From contig BQFW01000015.1 in assembly GCA_020891255.1 (NCBI GenBank), forward strand, positions 1,302,001-1,366,000: a stretch of 64,000 nucleotides of DNA, in the 5' to 3' direction. The translations under genes and the position numbers were made by a program. The notes beneath the pieces were generated by a model. That model made no database searches and was not told the DNA's origin. It saw only the letters and a list, made by a program, of their open reading frames with translations. The DNA comes from Entomortierella parvispora E1425. Its lineage: Eukaryota; Fungi; Mortierellomycota. Positions 32,237 to 41,556 of the stretch are shown here, one piece after another (within the stretch, counting starts at the first letter, position 1; every line of letters starts with the position of its first letter).

Positions 32237-35200
32237 TTAGAAGGACTTGCCGAGGACCAAGGCCAAGAGAGCCATGCGGACATACAATCCATAGCGCATC
32301 TGGCGGAAGTAGGCAGCACGCTGGTCAAAGTCGACCTCGGGCTCAATCTCAGAGACACGGGGCAAGGGGTGCATGACAACCATCTGGGTCTTGGCCTTGC
32401 TCATCATCTTGTTGTCGATGACATACGCGCTCTTGACGCGCTCGTACTCGTTCAAGTCCTCGAAACGCTCCTTCTGCACACGGGTCACATACACAACATC
32501 AGACTCAGCAATGACCTGGTTCAGGTCAGTGTACTCGTTGAAAGCAATGCCGGCCTTGTGGAGCTCAGACTTGACCTCCTCGGGCATCTGGAGAGAAGCA
32601 GGGGAGACAAAGTTCAAGGTGACGTGGTAGTAGGCCAACAACTTGACCAAAGAGTGGACAGTGCGGCCGTTCTTGAGGTCTCCGACAAGGGTAATGGTCA
32701 ATCCGTTGACAGTTCCGAGCTCCTCACGAATAGTGTACACATCCAAGAAGGCCTGGGTAGGGTGCTCACCAATGCCATCACCAGCGTTGATAATGGGGAC
32801 CTTGGAAAACTTGGCGGCAGTAGCGGCAGAGCCGGGAGCGGGGTGACGGAGCACGATCAAATCACCATAGCATCCGAGAGTGCGGACAGTGTCGGCCAAA
32901 GTCTCGCCCTTGACAACAGATGAGGAAGAGCCATCAGCGCTGACGACGGAGCCTCCCAAGCGGTGCATGGCAGCAGCGAAAGAGCAGGAGGTGCGGGTGG
33001 AGGGCTCGTAGAACATGGAGCACATCACCTTGCCGCGAAGCAAATCAATGGAGCCATTGCGCTCAACCTGGGTGCGCATCTCATGGGCCAAGCTGAACAA
33101 AGTGTGGAGCTCGTTGCGGTCAAACTGCTTCGAGGACAAGATGTGGCGGTGGGAGAAAGGCGAGTTGTTGAGGATACGCGAGATCACAGAGGGAACCTCC
33201 TTCACGGCAACAACACCGGCCTGGGCAGGGGTGGCGGCAGCGGCGGCGGCAGCAATGGCATCGTGGATGCTGCCACGGCGGGTATCACGAGCAGATAAGG
33301 GGGCATCCGAGGGTCCAAGGCGGGGGGAGAGGATGGAGGCCTGGGCAGCGTTGACAGCAGGCAAGACAACCTTCTCAATGGGCTTGGTGATGGCCTGAGC
33401 AAAGCTCGAGACATCCTGACCCTCCTTACCAGTGGTGTACCAGGCGCCGTCCAAGTAGGCGGTCTCTCCGTGAAGAATGACGCGGTGAACAGTGCCCGAC
33501 AAGGCCTTGCCAGCGAAAGGACCGGCAGTGTTGGAGAGAACACAGGCGCGATCAGTCTCAATCTCGACATAAGAGTCCTTCTGCTCGGGAAGAGAGAAGA
33601 TCTTGCGGGGGTTGGTGTAGAGCTTGGCGACAATGTCATCCATGGTCAAGCGACCCTTGTTGGCAGCATCGACCAAGAGAGGGAGAGCCTCCTCGATACC
33701 GGCATAGGCAACGGGGGTGCCCTTCTCAGCAGCAAGGCGGTAAGGCAAAGCACCGACAGTGAAGCAGTCAAAGACCTGGAGATCGGCCCAGAAGGCATCC
33801 TGCTCAGCCTTGGTAGGCAAAAGCTTGGAGTTGGTCTCCTCGCTGGTCAAGAACAAAGAGTAGACCTCAATGTCGCAAGTGACCTGGAGCTCCTTCTCCT
33901 TGGACATCATGATCAAGGCCATATCGTCACGGCTGTTGACACCGGTGATGTGGACAGAGCGGTTGTGGAGAGAGGCGAGGAGAAGAATCGAGGCGAGATC
34001 GTTACCCTTGGCATCGGTGATGATAGGGCTGTTCACGGGCCAGGAGCTGAAGTGCTTGGCAGCCTCGGCAACGTTGGCAACAGCACGACCAGCAATGGGA
34101 GTGAAAGGAATGAAGAGAGCGGCAGTCTCCTTCAAGCGATCGTTGACATTGTCGACGTTGGCGCTCATGGACAAGAAGTAGTCGCAGTGAGCGTGGTTGC
34201 GGGTGTTGGTGACAGCAATGGCCATCGAGGCCTTGTCCTCGACGCTCTTGGGGACACCAGTAGCCATGGCTCCGATCATGGTGAAACCAGAGGAAATGGC
34301 AGTCTTGGAGATCTCCTCAAAGTCCTTGCTGGCAGCGGAGGCGATGCCGGGGATCAAGGACTGGATGTTGATCAAACCAGGGAGGGTGACAGTGCGGTTG
34401 CTGTCCTTGTAGTCAACAGACTCAATGACAAAGTCCTTGTGGCGAGCAAGAGCCTCAACAAAGAGCTTGGCGCACTTGACGTTGGTGATCAAGGGGACAG
34501 AGAAGTCAACGGCCATACGACGGGTACGGTAACCCTTGGAGACGTAGCTGGCAGGGCGGCGGTAACGGTTCTTGGAAGGCAAGTTGATGTAAAGATCAAT
34601 CAAGTTGTTGGCCAAATGCTGGTTCAAAGAGTACTCGGACTTTTGGCTGTCGTTGTCATCCTCAAGAGCCTCGAGGTACTTGACGGGAACACCGTGCTCG
34701 CTCATGAAATCAGCGGTACCGGCAGTGGCAAACAAGTTGTAGCCGAGGGAACGGAGCTTCTTGACAGCGGGGAGCATCTCCTGCTTCTCCTTGAAGGAAC
34801 CAATGGAGAGCAAGACGTTCTTCTTGGGAAGAGTAAAGCCGGTAGAAACCAAGGCCTTGATGTAAGCCTCGTACTTGTCCTTGCCAAAGCAAGCAACCTC
34901 ACCAGTGGAAGCCATCTCGACACCGAGAATGGGGTCAGCACCAGAGAGACGCGAGAAAGAGAACTGAGGAACCTTGATACCGACATAGCCAGTCTTGGGG
35001 ACAGGCGACTCGGGGTAAGCCTCAACAGGGAAGCCCAACATGGCGTTGGTGGCCATCTCAATCAGATCGACCTCCATGACCTTGGAAACAAAAGGCATGG
35101 AACGGGAGGCACGCAAGTTGCACTCGATGACCTTGATCTCGTTGTCCTTGGCAATGAACTGAATGTTGTAGCATCCAGTGACGTCCAAAGCCTCACCAAT

Positions 35201-38200
35201 CTTGGCAGTGGCGCTGACAATCTTGCGGATGGTCTCGGGATCCAAATCCTGGGGAGGGAGAATAAGGGTGGCATCTCCAGAGTGAACACCGGCGTTCTCA
35301 ACGTGCTCGGAGACGACGTGCATGACCATCTTTCCGTTGACAGCGATAGCATCCATCTCAATCTCCTTGGCATCCTCAATGTACTTGGAGATGACGACGG
35401 GGTGATCGCGAGAGACAGCAGTGGCCTGTCCGAGGTAGTTGGCAAGATCATCGGGAGAGTAGACGACGTTCATGGCAGCTCCAGAAAGGACATAGGAGGG
35501 ACGGACCAAGACGGGGTAGCCGACCTTGTCACAGAACTCGCCAGCCTCATCGAAAGATGTCAACTCCTTCCACAAGGGCTGGTCAACCTCAATCTGATCC
35601 AACATACGAGAGAACTTGTAACGGTTCTCAGCAGTGTCAATCATCTCGGGGGAGGTTCCGAGAATCTTGACGTTCTGACGGTGCAAGGGAAGAGCAATGT
35701 TGTTGGGGGTTTGACCACCCATGGCAATGACAACACCGGAAGAGGTCTCGATCTCATAGATATCGAGAATGCGCTCCAAGTTGATGTTCTCAAAGTAAAG
35801 ACGATCAGCCTCATCGTAATCGGTAGAGACAGTCTCGGGGTTGTAGTTGACCATGACAGTCTTGACACCACGGCTGCGAAGGGTGCGAATGGCACGAACA
35901 GCGCACCAATCGAACTCGACCGAGGAACCAATGCGGTAAACACCGGAACCGAGAACCATGACACCCTTATCCTCAAAGGCGACATCGTGCTCAACAGCAT
36001 TGTAGGTCATGTAGAGGTAGTTGGTGAAAGCGGGGAACTCGGCGGCGACGGTATCAATCTGCTTGACGAAGGGAGTGATACCGGCATCGGTTCTCAAGCG
36101 GCGGACGGAAAGCTCGTTGCTGGAGATGGCGGTGGCAATCTGGCGATCAGAGAATCCGAGCTGCTTGGCAGAGCGGAGCATGTTGACTGGAACATCATTG
36201 GCAGTAAAGCCGCCCATGATCTTCTCGAGGTTAATGATGTTCATCAACTTGTTCAAGAACCACTTGTCGATATTGGTCAACTCCCAGATGCGGTCAACAG
36301 TGTATCCCTGCTTCATGGCGTTGGCAATGGCAAAGACGCGCTGGTCGTTGGGGTTCCTGAGCTCATCATCAATAACGGGGTACGACTCCTTGGGAGCGAA
36401 ACCGACCAAAGAGGGGTCAATGGCACGGATAGCCTTCTGGATGGTTTCCTCGAAAGTACGACCGATCGACATGACCTCTCCGACCGACTTCATAGACGAA
36501 GACAAAGCCTTGGAGACACGGTCAAACTTGGCCAAATCCCAACGAGGCATCTTGACGACAACGTAATCGAGGGAGGGCTCGAAGCAGGCGCAAGTCACCT
36601 TGGTGACCGAGTTGGAAATCTCGTTCAAGGGGATGTTGAGACCCAACTTGGCAGCAACGAAGGCCAAGGGGTAGCCAGTAGCCTTACTGGCCAAGGCGGA
36701 GGAACGCGAGAGACGAGCGTTGACCTCAATAATGCAGTACTCCTTGGAGAAGGGGTTGAGAGCATACTGAATGTTACACTCTCCAACAACTCCCAAGTGG
36801 CGAATGACGTTGACGGCAGTGGTACGCAACATGTTGTAGTCCTCATCGGACAAGGTTTGCGAAGGAGCGACGACAATAGAGTCTCCAGTGTGGATTCCAA
36901 GGGGATCGAAGTTCTATTGTTGGGCAAAGTTGATTTGAGTGAGTTTGATGAATACAGCAGTCACATTTGCCACCAATTCCTGTGTTATTTTTTGATTCTT
37001 TTTTCTTACCTCCATGTTACAAACAGTGATACAGTTGTCACGGCAATCACGAACGACCTCGTACTCAATCTCCTTCCAGCCCTTCATGGAACGCTCAATC
37101 AAGACCTGGGGAGAGGTGGCAAAGGCGCGAGAGACGAGCTCGGTCAACTCTTCGTCATTGTTGGCGAAACCAGATCCCAAACCACCGAGAGCGAAAGCAG
37201 CACGGCAAATGACGGGGTAACCAATCTCGTTGGCAGCATTGATGGCTTCCTGGAGGTTGACAGCAGTCTGAGCCTGGGCAATCTTCTCGCCAATGGAAAG
37301 CATACGCTGAGCAAAGATCTCGCGATCCTCAGTGGCAATGATGGTCTCGATGGGGGTACCGAGGACACGGACACCCAATCCAGCAAACTCGTCCTTCATC
37401 TTGATACCGACCGAGAGGGCAGTCTGACCACCAAAGGTGACATAGATACCGTCGGGCTTCTCGCGGAGGATGACCTTGCGGACAAACTCGGGGGTGACGG
37501 GCAAGAAGTAGACCTTGTCAGCAAGACCCTTGGAGGTCTGAATGGTGGCAATGTTGGGGTTGATGAGGACGGTGTAGATACCCTCCTCCTTCAAGGCCTT
37601 GATGGCCTGGGAACCAGAGTAATCGAACTCACCGGCCTGACCGATGGAAAGACCACCGGAACCGAGAACCAAGACCTTGCGGACGTGGACACGAGGGTTC
37701 AAAGCAGCAGCCTCCTCCTTGGTGCCACCGGGCATGGTGATGGCCTTCAAGGTGCCAGTCTTTCTGAAGTCAACAACAGAGTTGATGAAGACATCAAAGA
37801 GGTACTCGGTGTCGCGAGGTCCAGGGGTCGACTCGGGATGGAACTGAACAGAGAAGATGGGGAGGGTCTTGTGCATGATACCCTCGTTGGATCCATCGTT
37901 GGCGTTGACGAAAAGCTCCATGAAGTTTTCGGGGAGAGACTCGACATCGACGGCGTATCCGTGGTTCTGGGACGAGATGTAGCAGCGGCCAGAGATCATG
38001 TCCGTGCAGGGAATGTTGTGGCCACGGTTACCGAACTTCATCTTCTTGGTGGAGGCACCGGAAGCAAGAGCAAGGAGCTGGTGTCCCAAGCAAATACCAA
38101 AGATGGGGGTGCGGGCGATCTGGAGAGCCTTGGCCAAGTGAGCAATGGTGACAGTGTTCATGACTGGGTCACCGGGACCGTTGGAGATGAAGAGACCATC

Positions 38201-39342
38201 ATAGTCGGTATCAGCGTTGAAGTCATAGTCCCAGGGAACGACCTTGACCTCGACACCACGAGCGACAAAGCAGCGGATCTGGTTGAATTTCTGTTTTGGA
38301 AAAAGAGGAGTGACGTTAGAGTTTGTTTTGTTGATCTGTTGCCTGGAGACCTTTCTGAATCCAATTCTCACGTACCATTCCCACATCGACAGCGAGGATG
38401 CGAAGGGGCTTTCCATTGGGTCCGACCAAAGCAGTAGAGGCCTCAGGGGTGTAGAGCTTGGGCTCCTTCAAGGAAACTATTTAGGAGACGACTCAAAATT
38501 AGCCTTTTATACTTTTTTCACATACGCATGTTCCCACACGTTATCATATGCATTGATCTATATAGATCTGTATCTTACCTTCAGCAACCAAGTTGCGGGC
38601 GTTGGGATCAACCCAGTCAACGTTCTGGTACTCGTTCATCCACTCGGCATCAGCGGGGACAACAGTAGGACCAACGATCGAGGTAGGGAAGAGGATCTTT
38701 CCGAGCATGGCTCCCTTGGTACGGATCTTCTTGGTCATGGCCCTGGTGTCAATACCGTAGATGGCAGGGATGTTGAACTCCTTGAGCCAGGCGCCGAGAG
38801 AGGAGGTGGCAAGGTAATGGGAGAAATCCTGGGAGTACTGTCCGACGATCAAACCGGCAATGTGGATCTCGTTCGACTCAAAGTGCTTGGGCAAGTCCTT
38901 GAGGAGAGGATCCATGGTCTCACGCGAGGGAACACCATAGTTACCGACCAAAGGGAAGGTAAGGACCAAGATCTGACCTCTGTAGGAGGGATCGGTCAAG
39001 GACTCGGGGTATCCAACCATACCTAATGTTATCACGCATAAAAGAGTTGCTCAGTCGACTGGAAACAAATAACACAGCGACTCCATCAGTCCACAAGCAG
39101 GCTCTTTTTGTAGCGTTGAACAAGCACATACCTGTCTGGAAGACACACTCTCCGGCGATACTCTTGGTCTCGGCACCGAAGGAGATACCCTGGAAGGAGG
39201 ATCCATCCTTGAGGACAAGGGTAGCGACGGTCGAAGCCTCGGTCTGATCACAGGGAGGGGCAGTGACGGGAGGGTGAGGCAACGCGTTGGCAACAACGGT
39301 CTGGGCGACAGAAGTGGGGCGGGAGATCTGGGAGGAAGGCAT
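32237..39342 (-). CDS. URA2: Multifunctional pyrimidine synthesis protein (GATase-CPSase-pseudo-DHOase-ATCase); exons 39342-39132, 39022-38579, 38476-38376, 38290-37010, 36913-32237
   Basis: GICLGHQ and QFHPE (GATase); [17 protein letters not shown] and [22 protein letters not shown] (CPS); [12 protein letters not shown] and MHPLPR (ATCase). Confidence 0.98.
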
Positions 39343-39896
39343 TATGGGATTTTTATAAAAAAATGTGGGGAAGATGAAACGGTGAAGAGTAGAGTACAGT
39401 TACAAAAGTCAGGTAGAAAGAATTACAAAGGAACAGAAAAAAAGCAATGAAAATGAAGAAACAGAAAGTGAAGGGTGTGAAGGGTGTGAAGGGTGTGAAG
39501 GTGAAGGAATGCTGTTGTTAATGCAAAGACCACTGCTCGCGGTTGTCAGGTGCGGGGAGTTGGTGTGTGAAGGGTTGCAGAACATAACAGAAGAAGAAGA
39601 AGAAGAGAAAAGAAGAAGAAAGAGAAGAAAAAGAAGCAAAGGCAGCGCACACAGGGCCGCTTCTTATGGGGAACGCAGTCTGGGGAGAAAAAAAAAAAAA
39701 AAGTCCGACTCCAAAACAGTCCAAGCCACCGAGATCTAGAGATTTCAAAATCTTCAATTCGCGGCCCCGCGACGCGTGGTGGGATCCATAATTGAGTGTG
39801 ATGCGTGCGGAGGCCCTGTTAAGGGGTTTATTTTGAGTCCCAGCTCTTCAGGCACCAGCCATTGGAGCTACCTGCTCCGGTATTTTGGTGCGCCGA

Positions 39897-41556
39897 TCAA
39901 AGACTCGAGACCAAGAACCTTCTTTCGAGCCATCCAATGTCTCCGACTACCTCCAGACCGCTTCCCTGGCCCTCGTCCTCCACAATAATCTCGCCTGATC
40001 CCATACGCCAGAGCTTCATTTTTGTGTTTGCGATGATCGTCTCCTCGACCGCAGTGGCCATTCGTCTCTGGGAACGACTGGGTGCTCGAAGAGGAACGCC
40101 CGTACCAATCTCGCGAGTCATCTGGACCTGAAGTGCAACCGTCTCTTGGCCATTCTGAGGATCTTTTGTCACCGCTGTGAATGACACCGTCTGTAGTCGT
40201 CTCTCAATGTCCATAGTGACTTTCAAGTTTTCTAGTCTGGCTGCAAATATGTAGCTAGAAAAGTTGTACATGGTCTTGGTGGAAGCGTGATAATACACCA
40301 GCAGTAGCCCCGGTACATTGGTCAGAGAAGACAAGATTGGGAGGTGGGTCGACACCCATTCGCTAACGTCGGGTCCAAGGACTGGGATCGATGCCACCGA
40401 CAACTGACAAACAGTCCAGTTGGTAAATAGAAAAAAGATATGTCAGCAAGAACTTGTCATCAAGAACTCGTCATATAAAAGCGGACTGGTGCATCCATGA
40501 AAGGTCAATTACCAGTAGGGACGATCCGGGTGCCTTCTCAAAGATATTTGTCTGTCCCCAGATCCAAGTCGAAGGAAAATTAATACCCCAATCCTTTTCG
40601 GTATAGCCGACGCCACCATCAAACACAGACTCAGTAATGGCCCCCGAGGCAGTTACAACAGAAATGAGACCATCTTCGATCGGGTGATGGAGTGAAGCAA
40701 CACCATGATTGCATTCCAAGAATGGCAAATACGCTGTGAAACCCATGATGGAAGGGTAAAGTCGAGAGGTTGGAAGAGGCGTCTGTAGTCCTGCAGAGAA
40801 TCGGAACTGACCCTTCACTGCAAAAGGCTCGAGACTCGCTAGCGCTTTTAAATCCTTTTGGCTTGGAAACATGGCACGAAAGTCACTCACAGGATGGTCA
40901 TCCTCGACTGTTGCTCGGTATTGACGCTCGTATTGCTGACTGGCTTCCGTGTAAAAGGCCTCGAGCTCTTCCTCTGGGACCTGTTCAAAGCGATCCTTGG
41001 GCAGATTCAAAACTATCCCATCGTGGGCAAAAACACTTTGTCCAATCCTGACCCTGAAGGCTCTCTCTTGTCCTGGCTCCTGACTCCCCAAGTCCACAAA
41101 CTCTTTGATAGGGAACCGATAGTAGGCTGACTTTTGAGTACCTGGAAGTCCCAAGATCATGACGAACGCGTGAGCCCTTGAGTCCTCGCCTTTGTCAACC
41201 CCACCATTTTGTGATGGTTCGCTCAAGGGGGAGCGCGGAGAAGGAGGTCTATAGATTCCCGGGATAAGGGCCATTCCAATTGTGGGGTCGTCCTTGGTCA
41301 GACCCGGTTTGACAATTTTGAAGTACCATCCCTCAAAGAAATTTGAGCGAATATGCTGACCATGATACTGGAGAGGCCTGTGGAGGTTCTTGACGTTGGA
41401 CCAGAAGTAGGAGGCCTTTGAAGTGGGTGAGAGCGTAAACTGGATGAGCATTGCTGAGAGCACCGCCAGGACGGCAGTTTGGATCAGTCGACGACGAGGA
41501 CGTGCTCTCGCATAGCCGGTTGCTAGGTCTGGTGATGGGAAGGAGGGATCTTTCAT
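39897..41556 (-). CDS. Tocopherol cyclase-like protein with N-terminal membrane anchor; exons 41556-40513, 40403-39897
   Basis: FFEGWYFK, IMGFTAYLPFLECNHGVASLHH, GVGYTEKDWGINFPSTWIWGQTN and VASIP motifs recalled from the tocopherol-cyclase family; GT-AG intron in frame. Confidence 0.75.

Follow-up and report, generated by a model that had tools for sequence, protein, structure and literature searches.

An anchored fungal branch of the tocopherol cyclase-like proteins in Entomortierella parvispora

The window analyzed here is a stretch of 64,000 nucleotides from the genome of Entomortierella parvispora E1425 (contig BQFW01000015.1, positions 1,302,001 to 1,366,000), and the gene in question lies on its minus strand at 41556-39897, where two exons encode a protein of 516 residues. 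The gene is intact, nuclear and long resident in the fungus, and its product represents a new, anchored fungal branch within a known family, i.e., the tocopherol cyclase-like (TC-like) proteins that occur in heterotrophic bacteria and archaea and were noted in 2016 with no assigned function (PMC4963081). Placed by its sequence, the protein belongs with this TC-like clade and not with the cyanobacterial and plastid cyclases of the VTE1 clade. The superfamily-level assignment is right, and the functional name “tocopherol cyclase”, under which the protein is publicly stored, is probably wrong. With regard to its activity, we lean, by a little, towards a membrane-anchored enzyme of the superfamily which would protonate a carbon-carbon double bond of an isoprenoid and add an oxygen nucleophile, the substrate being neither a tocopherol precursor nor a carotenoid made by the fungus itself.

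Family membership, fold and phylogenetic placement

The initial annotation, made from the sequence alone, had assigned the gene to the tocopherol cyclase family, and this assignment is upheld at the superfamily level by the Pfam score, the full-length profile homology, the motif skeleton and the fold. The check that it proposed, with the Pfam hidden Markov model Tocopherol_cycl (PF14249), was passed with 54.6 bits (E 1.2e-14) against a cut-off of 26.6, the best stretch being residues 269-349 only (profile positions 144-218), and exon 1 alone scored 42.7 bits. PF14249 was the sole sequence-family match in the family search; neither exon had a family match in NCBIfam, and no PDB chain among the solved structures was matched by sequence at E values up to 1. 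When an alignment of the fungal and prokaryotic TC-like proteins (A1) is compared with one of 14 canonical cyclases (A3), hhalign returns 99.7% (E 5.1e-27) over 336 columns, and, given that this profile alignment covers residues 64-508, the homology to the canonical cyclases VTE1, SXD1 and slr1737 (EC 5.5.1.24) spans the whole domain and places them all in one superfamily.

The motif skeleton of the tocopherol cyclases, as named in PMC4963081, is present in both A1 and a wider alignment of all of the subfamilies (A2), and consists of FFEGWY, YxEK(N/D)WG, FPxxWxWxQxNxF and a C-terminal GLE. In the E. parvispora protein, FFEGWYFK occupies residues 73-80 (41317-41340, minus strand, as are the other features of this protein), with E75, G76 and W77 invariant in all of the subfamilies, including VTE1, and the same motif occurs in Arabidopsis VTE1 (supplement of PMC4963081). 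The most conserved block in the family, YTEKDWGINFPSTWIWGQTNIF, occupies residues 318-339 (40540-40605), and the residues Y318, E320, K321, G324, P328, W331, W333 and F339 within it are invariant in all of the subfamilies; in VTE1, YxEKNWG and FPxxWxWxQxNxF have been named as the parts where catalysis probably takes place (PMC4963081). Towards the C-terminus, the LEV of the GLEVVG block is found at 39948-39956, with E499 invariant in all of the subfamilies. Given this, the residues E75, G76, W77, Y318, E320, K321, W331, W333 and E499 are invariant in both the fungal protein and VTE1, and the charged residues that are invariant across all of the subfamilies in A2, from archaea to plants, include H65, E75, E320, K321 and E499.

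Other motif positions distinguish the TC-like proteins from the canonical cyclases. As is typical in the TC-like clade, residues 281-285 (40702-40716) read ECNHG, and both D322 and E281-C282-x-H284-G285 are invariant in A1, so that the fungal proteins present EKDWG and ECNHG where the canonical cyclases aligned have EKNWG and FEPGWQ or FEPHWQ. The fungal clade retains 35 of the 35 columns that are invariant in A1.

The AlphaFold (AF2) model built on A1 has a mean predicted local distance difference test (pLDDT) score of 87.6 and a predicted template modeling (pTM) score of 0.88, and its fold is an AttH-like, two-lobed double beta-barrel (VIA-align Z 15.6-22.4, root-mean-square deviation, rmsd, 3.2-4.3 over 264-317 residues; Foldseek E down to 7e-9). 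The structures matched with VIA-align include Fsa2 (Z 22.4, rmsd 3.4 over 306 residues), CghA (Z 21.8, 3.4 over 315), Phm7 (Z 21.5, 3.5 over 312), AttH (Z 20.0, 4.1 over 285), kievitone hydratase (Z 18.1, 3.8 over 270) and the 25-phosphosteroid lyase (Z 15.6, 4.3 over 275).

Phylogenetic analysis places the protein away from VTE1. The canonical cyclases were gathered from metagenome contigs with the pattern YxEKNWG..FP..W, which is invariant in photosynthetic organisms (PMC4963081), and five of them, comprising cyanobacterial-type and algal-type open reading frames (ORFs), scored 381-556 bits against PF14249 over positions 1-335, approximately ten times the score of the E. parvispora protein. 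In a maximum-likelihood tree of 100 rows, the canonical VTE1 cyclases form one separate clade (support 100), and the 15 named fungal proteins, together with two further ones, form a single clade (support 99) on a long stem branch (0.53-0.58), which is nested inside the prokaryotic TC-like clade (stem 1.89, support 100; 98 one node deeper). An approximately unbiased (AU) test, run on a 50-row subset under LG+G4, with the tested group chosen once the first tree was known, rejected a clade of the fungi and VTE1 (delta lnL 71.7, p 0.0007). The nearest non-fungal matches are proteins of approximately 320 residues with 27-31% identity over their full length, from Anaerolineae, Bacteroidales, methanogens, Actinomycetota, Clostridium and others, and they share EKDWG and ECNHG with the fungal proteins. 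An orthology to VTE1 is thus contradicted by the tree position, the AU test and the Pfam scores.

The fungal proteins are also set apart by their N-terminus and by two inserts. The motif PRRR (41488-41499) precedes a hydrophobic helix at residues 24-42 (41431-41487; Kyte-Doolittle 19-residue mean of 1.96), which AF2 models as a helix at residues 15-42. Of 16 fungal homologues that were inspected, 12 have an equivalent segment (those from Mortierellaceae, Jimgerdemannia, Funneliformis, Rhizophagus irregularis and both chytrids), whereas three Glomeromycota models lack it, their N-termini being short and perhaps truncated in gene calling; it was found in no prokaryotic TC-like protein compared. 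The hydrophobic anchor that had been proposed from the sequence is therefore confirmed as a conserved character of the fungal clade, and it differs from the plastid targeting of plant VTE1. While the prokaryotic proteins have approximately 320 residues and no anchor, the fungal ones have approximately 440-550, with the anchor and two helical inserts. The first insert, of approximately 60 residues, covers residues 189-246 or so in A1 (40819-40992; AF2 helices 195-216, 226-229 and 233-240), and the second, of approximately 20 residues, around 356-376 (40320-40382), is also predicted to be helical (AF2 helices 359-368 and 370-375).

At the loop of the first fungal insert (VPEEELEAFY...), canonical VTE1 has an insert as well (SPPEF..EGYQ), that of VTE1 being the shorter one (comparison with the loci L110:7639-8742 and L132:1265-2719), and the prokaryotic proteins of approximately 320 residues have no insert at this loop. 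The two may have arisen in parallel, which is the reading adopted here because of the tree, or they may represent a lid or an element of membrane contact that both groups share.

The search with the EKNWG pattern (metagenome loci L092-L171) caught other proteins in addition to the canonical cyclases. These include an actinobacterial-looking PF14249 type of approximately 320 residues with QYWHP and WWWGQ (approximately 19-53 bits against the A1 profile), a PF14249 type of approximately 350 residues with LQTYWHV, and TC-like proteins in which MQCYAQV replaces ECNHG. Given these three further subfamilies, the superfamily has at least five deep branches. An Atlas look-up of feature-based look-alikes also returned a 98-member cluster of 440-residue proteins labelled Nucleocytoviricota (score 0.90) and two Ascomycota clusters of approximately 330 residues, in which 18-29% of the members have PF14249, which suggests, as a lead, that there are further eukaryotic and giant-virus members of the superfamily.

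Proposed chemistry and competing readings

Catalysis, its chemistry and the class of substrate are what we infer for this protein. In the mechanism proposed here, the AttH-like double beta-barrel would bind a membrane-held isoprenoid lipid of hydrophobic nature, and a conserved acidic residue, the candidates being E75, E320 and E499, with K321 and H65, would protonate a trisubstituted carbon-carbon double bond of this lipid. Either water or a hydroxyl group of the substrate itself would then add to the carbocation, which may result in hydration or in ring closure. Acid-catalyzed addition is proposed because of the invariant charged residues, two fold relatives that act on this kind of group (kievitone hydratase and the 25-phosphosteroid lyase) and the Chloroflexota operons described below, and, by analogy with VTE1, an addition of this type to a prenyl double bond is probable. 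To our knowledge, the sole characterized member of the superfamily is an enzyme that protonates a prenyl double bond. Kievitone hydratase and CrtC add water to a double bond of a prenyl group or of a carotenoid end; the kievitone hydratase, CrtC and AttH group matches the model in its fold (Z 18-20), with approximately 10% identity in the structural alignment and no sequence-family match. The 25-phosphosteroid lyase acts at C24-C25 of a sterol side chain, and the description of its solved complex names a desmost-diene product.

The genome limits the substrates that are available. A scan of the whole genome with the UbiA model PF01040 found two genes only, COX10 (TIGR01473, 286.7 bits) and COQ2 (TIGR01474), and no homogentisate prenyltransferase, either phytyl- or solanesyl-. 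The search for both HPPD and this prenyltransferase had been suggested in the initial annotation, and it succeeded for HPPD only (470.9 bits), the presence of which is presumably accounted for by tyrosine breakdown. As there is no homogentisate prenyltransferase, the fungus has no known route to the substrate of tocopherol cyclase, the canonical form of the chromanol pathway that had been envisaged is not borne out, and the tocopherol precursor is excluded as the substrate because prenylated homogentisate would not be made by any known route.

The genome was also searched for a CrtI-family desaturase, with no match above the cut-off, and, given that no phytoene desaturase of the CrtI type was found, E. 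parvispora would make no carotenoids by the usual route. A self-made carotenoid was, on this basis, rejected as the substrate. Two genes of the SQS_PSY family are present (G000:C13:1739649-1740559 and G000:C4:2241348-2242080), one of the matches running across an in-frame TAG that is probably part of an intron.

The candidates that remain for the substrate would be ubiquinol or one of its intermediates, a sterol whose side chain is unsaturated at 24(25), and polyprenol or dolichol, and no choice is made among them. The Mortierellaceae are noted for sterols of the desmosterol type, which suggests the sterol as an idea only, and nothing here supports it directly.

The prokaryotic relatives provide the link to isoprenoid chemistry. 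In five of the 69 prokaryotic loci, each of them from Chloroflexota, the end of the TC-like gene runs into the beginning of a CruF-type Caroten_synth gene, with an overlap of 4 bases at four of the five loci. The order in these Chloroflexota (Anaerolineae, Phototrophicaceae) is one or more DUF6992 genes, the TC-like gene, the CruF-type Caroten_synth gene, a small ORF or a PlsY-like acyltransferase, a family-2 glycosyltransferase and a CrtI-like oxidase, forming apparent carotenoid operons (L047:2801-12985, L060:7666-12933, L016:5919-11686, L035:7995-12651 and L080:454-2535), with a phytoene synthase and a lycopene-cyclase domain also upstream in L047 alone. No earlier description of this link between TC-like genes and carotenoid operons was found. 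At least one TC-like branch is therefore tied to the chemistry of isoprenoid end groups, and the hydratase chemistry of kievitone hydratase and CrtC fits this context.

Several observations weigh against the acid-catalyzed addition proposed here. No neighbor is widely shared among the 69 prokaryotic loci, in which the commonest neighbor family occurs in six, and many of the genes belong to hosts (methanogens, clostridia and Bacteroidales) that have no carotenoids and, in some cases, no quinones. The top fold relatives are pericyclases rather than hydratases, and the chemistry would be extrapolated from distant relatives and from the fold. Svf1, which we take to be a lipid-binding relative, appears here as a weak, feature-based look-alike only. 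The charge balance around the N-terminal helix varies between species and gives no membrane orientation, and it is the conservation of the E. parvispora gene that argues for its expression. No member of the TC-like clade has been assigned a known activity (PMC4963081). The spread of the genes in methanogens, clostridia and Bacteroidales, and their variable neighbors, argue against a single substrate for the clade, which may have several. Two single-locus neighborhood look-ups in prokaryotes returned nothing notable.

An unlikely alternative is a cyclase that would form a chromanol from a prenylquinol of non-plastid origin, such as ubiquinol or a ubiquinone precursor, and thus provide a lipid antioxidant in fungi rich in polyunsaturated fatty acids. 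The skeleton of the catalytic region is shared with VTE1, COQ2 is present, which means that polyprenyl quinols are made, and both the fungal proteins and VTE1 have the loop insert that is missing in the prokaryotic proteins. However, this insert differs in length and sequence and may be parallel, the AU test rejects a sister relation to VTE1, the clade in which the fungal proteins are nested includes quinone-free anaerobic hosts, e.g., Methanobacterium and Clostridium, and the literature search gave no report linking fungal chromanols to the gene. The barrel could also be non-catalytic, holding a hydrophobic ligand for lipid binding or transfer as in the AttH-like Svf1, whose clusters are found, as a lead, among the feature-based look-alikes (score 0.88). 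The absence of a metabolic partner nearby in three fungi would agree with such a role, as would the fold itself, but the strict invariance of E75, E320, K321, E499 and H65 from archaea to plants, the enzymatic nature of the one characterized family member and the location of the Chloroflexota gene inside biosynthetic operons speak for catalysis, and we give a lipid carrier a rather slim chance.

Given that the best structural matches are the decalin-forming fungal Diels-Alderases Fsa2, Phm7 and CghA and the pericyclases 7e22, 7dmn and 7dmo (Z 21-22, rmsd 3.2-3.6 over 300-317 residues), a pericyclase or another tailoring enzyme of secondary metabolism must be considered as well. Pericyclases of the Fsa2 type sit in clusters of polyketide synthases (PKS) and non-ribosomal peptide synthetases (NRPS), whereas the E. 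parvispora gene has housekeeping neighbors, with no PKS, NRPS or cluster gene nearby, and keeps the tocopherol cyclase motifs. The sequence identity to these structures is 10-12%, and a single orthologue is kept across whole phyla, unlike the usual cluster-bound tailoring enzymes, which makes this reading very improbable. The enzyme that the NCBI name denotes, i.e., a true tocopherol cyclase in a fungus that makes tocopherols or tocotrienols, has in its favor the Pfam match and the presence of HPPD, but tyrosine breakdown would account for the latter. The UbiA genes are limited to COX10 and COQ2, the protein lies outside the VTE1 clade, and its Pfam match covers one stretch of 80 residues, compared with the full-length matches of the canonical cyclases, so that a true tocopherol cyclase can be given hardly any credence.

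Gene structure, locus and distribution

The ORF listing and its translation give a gene of two exons, as had been annotated. Exon 1 (41556-40513, with the ATG at 41556-41554) encodes residues 1-348, and exon 2 (40403-39897) encodes the 168 residues 349-516 (40403-39900), followed by the stop codon at 39899-39897. The translations of both exons are exactly those of residues 1-348 and 349-516 of the stored NCBI protein “tocopherol cyclase [Entomortierella parvispora]” (P0001, 516 residues), which was found by a word search and used as the reference in the full-length analyses, and all of the motifs listed in the initial annotation are found in their places. The spliceosomal intron between the exons (40512-40404, 109 nucleotides, phase 0), as read from the sequence, has GT..AG borders (GTAATT...TTGTCAG) and a CTGAC branch-like site inside. 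The splice junction restores a conserved stretch, SSLL|LSVASIP, which is continuous in the prokaryotic homologues in A1 and likewise in the genes of Rhizophagus and Geranomyces, which were called at the very length of their coding sequence, and this conservation supports both the intron and its splicing. A search for sequencing runs listed no RNA run.

The gene is present as a single copy in a genome of 38.9 Mb and 20 contigs. Its guanine-cytosine (GC) content (0.51-0.52) is close to that of the window (0.506), with 0.385 in the intron. Recent transfer and contamination were considered and ruled out by the intron, the host-like GC content, the eukaryotic neighbors on a 2.8-Mb contig, and the orthologues in several phyla.

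Downstream of the gene lies a multi-exon pyrimidine gene of the CAD/URA2 type (32237-39342, minus strand), with glutamine amidotransferase, carbamoyl-phosphate synthase, MGS-like and aspartate carbamoyltransferase domains, and upstream of it there are ORFs without an assignment and a protein kinase. No biosynthetic cluster, PKS, NRPS or metabolic partner gene was found among the neighbors in the window, which agrees with the earlier remark that no prenyltransferase or methyltransferase partner is visible there. A long plus-strand ORF (33470-38437) opposite the CAD/URA2-type gene is probably its shadow. Just past the stop codon, and before the CAD-type gene, a purine-rich AAG/AGA tract of low complexity and a run of 13 adenines occupy 39600-39715.

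Homologue searches, in each of which the best 120 matches were listed, found orthologues in nine genera of Mortierellaceae among these matches (48-86% identity), in the Glomeromycota (Rhizophagus, Funneliformis, Glomus, Gigaspora and Dentiscutata), in the Endogonales (Jimgerdemannia) and in the chytrids Geranomyces and Cladochytrium, and none in either the Dikarya or the Mucorales among the best 120 matches of each search. In Rhizophagus and Geranomyces, the gene lies among ordinary eukaryotic genes and in no cluster, and no neighbor gene is common to these two and the E. parvispora window. As one clade spans the chytrids and the Mucoromycota, the gene predates the split of these lineages. The nesting of the fungal clade among prokaryotic TC-like proteins fits a single, ancient transfer from prokaryotes, as read from a tree whose root is uncertain. 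The bacterial origin put forward in the initial annotation is compatible with this tree, but not as a recent event, given that any such transfer would have been both ancient and single.

Significance for the family and for the early-diverging fungi

No publication that deals with TC-like proteins of fungi, with PF14249 or with the synthesis of tocopherol in Mortierella emerged from the literature search. As a long shot, the early-diverging fungi, i.e., the arbuscular mycorrhizal fungi, Mortierella and the chytrids, might use the anchored enzyme to make an unrecognized cyclized or hydrated isoprenoid lipid, such as a chromanol derived from ubiquinol, as an antioxidant of the membrane, or a 25-hydroxylated sterol derived from their sterols of the desmosterol type. 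If this were true, it would provide the first function for the whole TC-like clade, and in a genetically tractable host.

With the public name “tocopherol cyclase”, metabolic reconstructions of both Mortierella and the arbuscular mycorrhizal fungi would be led astray. The TC-like proteins are very widespread in heterotrophic bacteria and archaea, the species-genome scan having matched at least 568 stretches, and the conserved, single-copy fungal orthologue offers a eukaryotic model for their function in which knockouts and lipidomics are feasible, just as the link to the carotenoid operons of the Chloroflexota offers a bacterial one.

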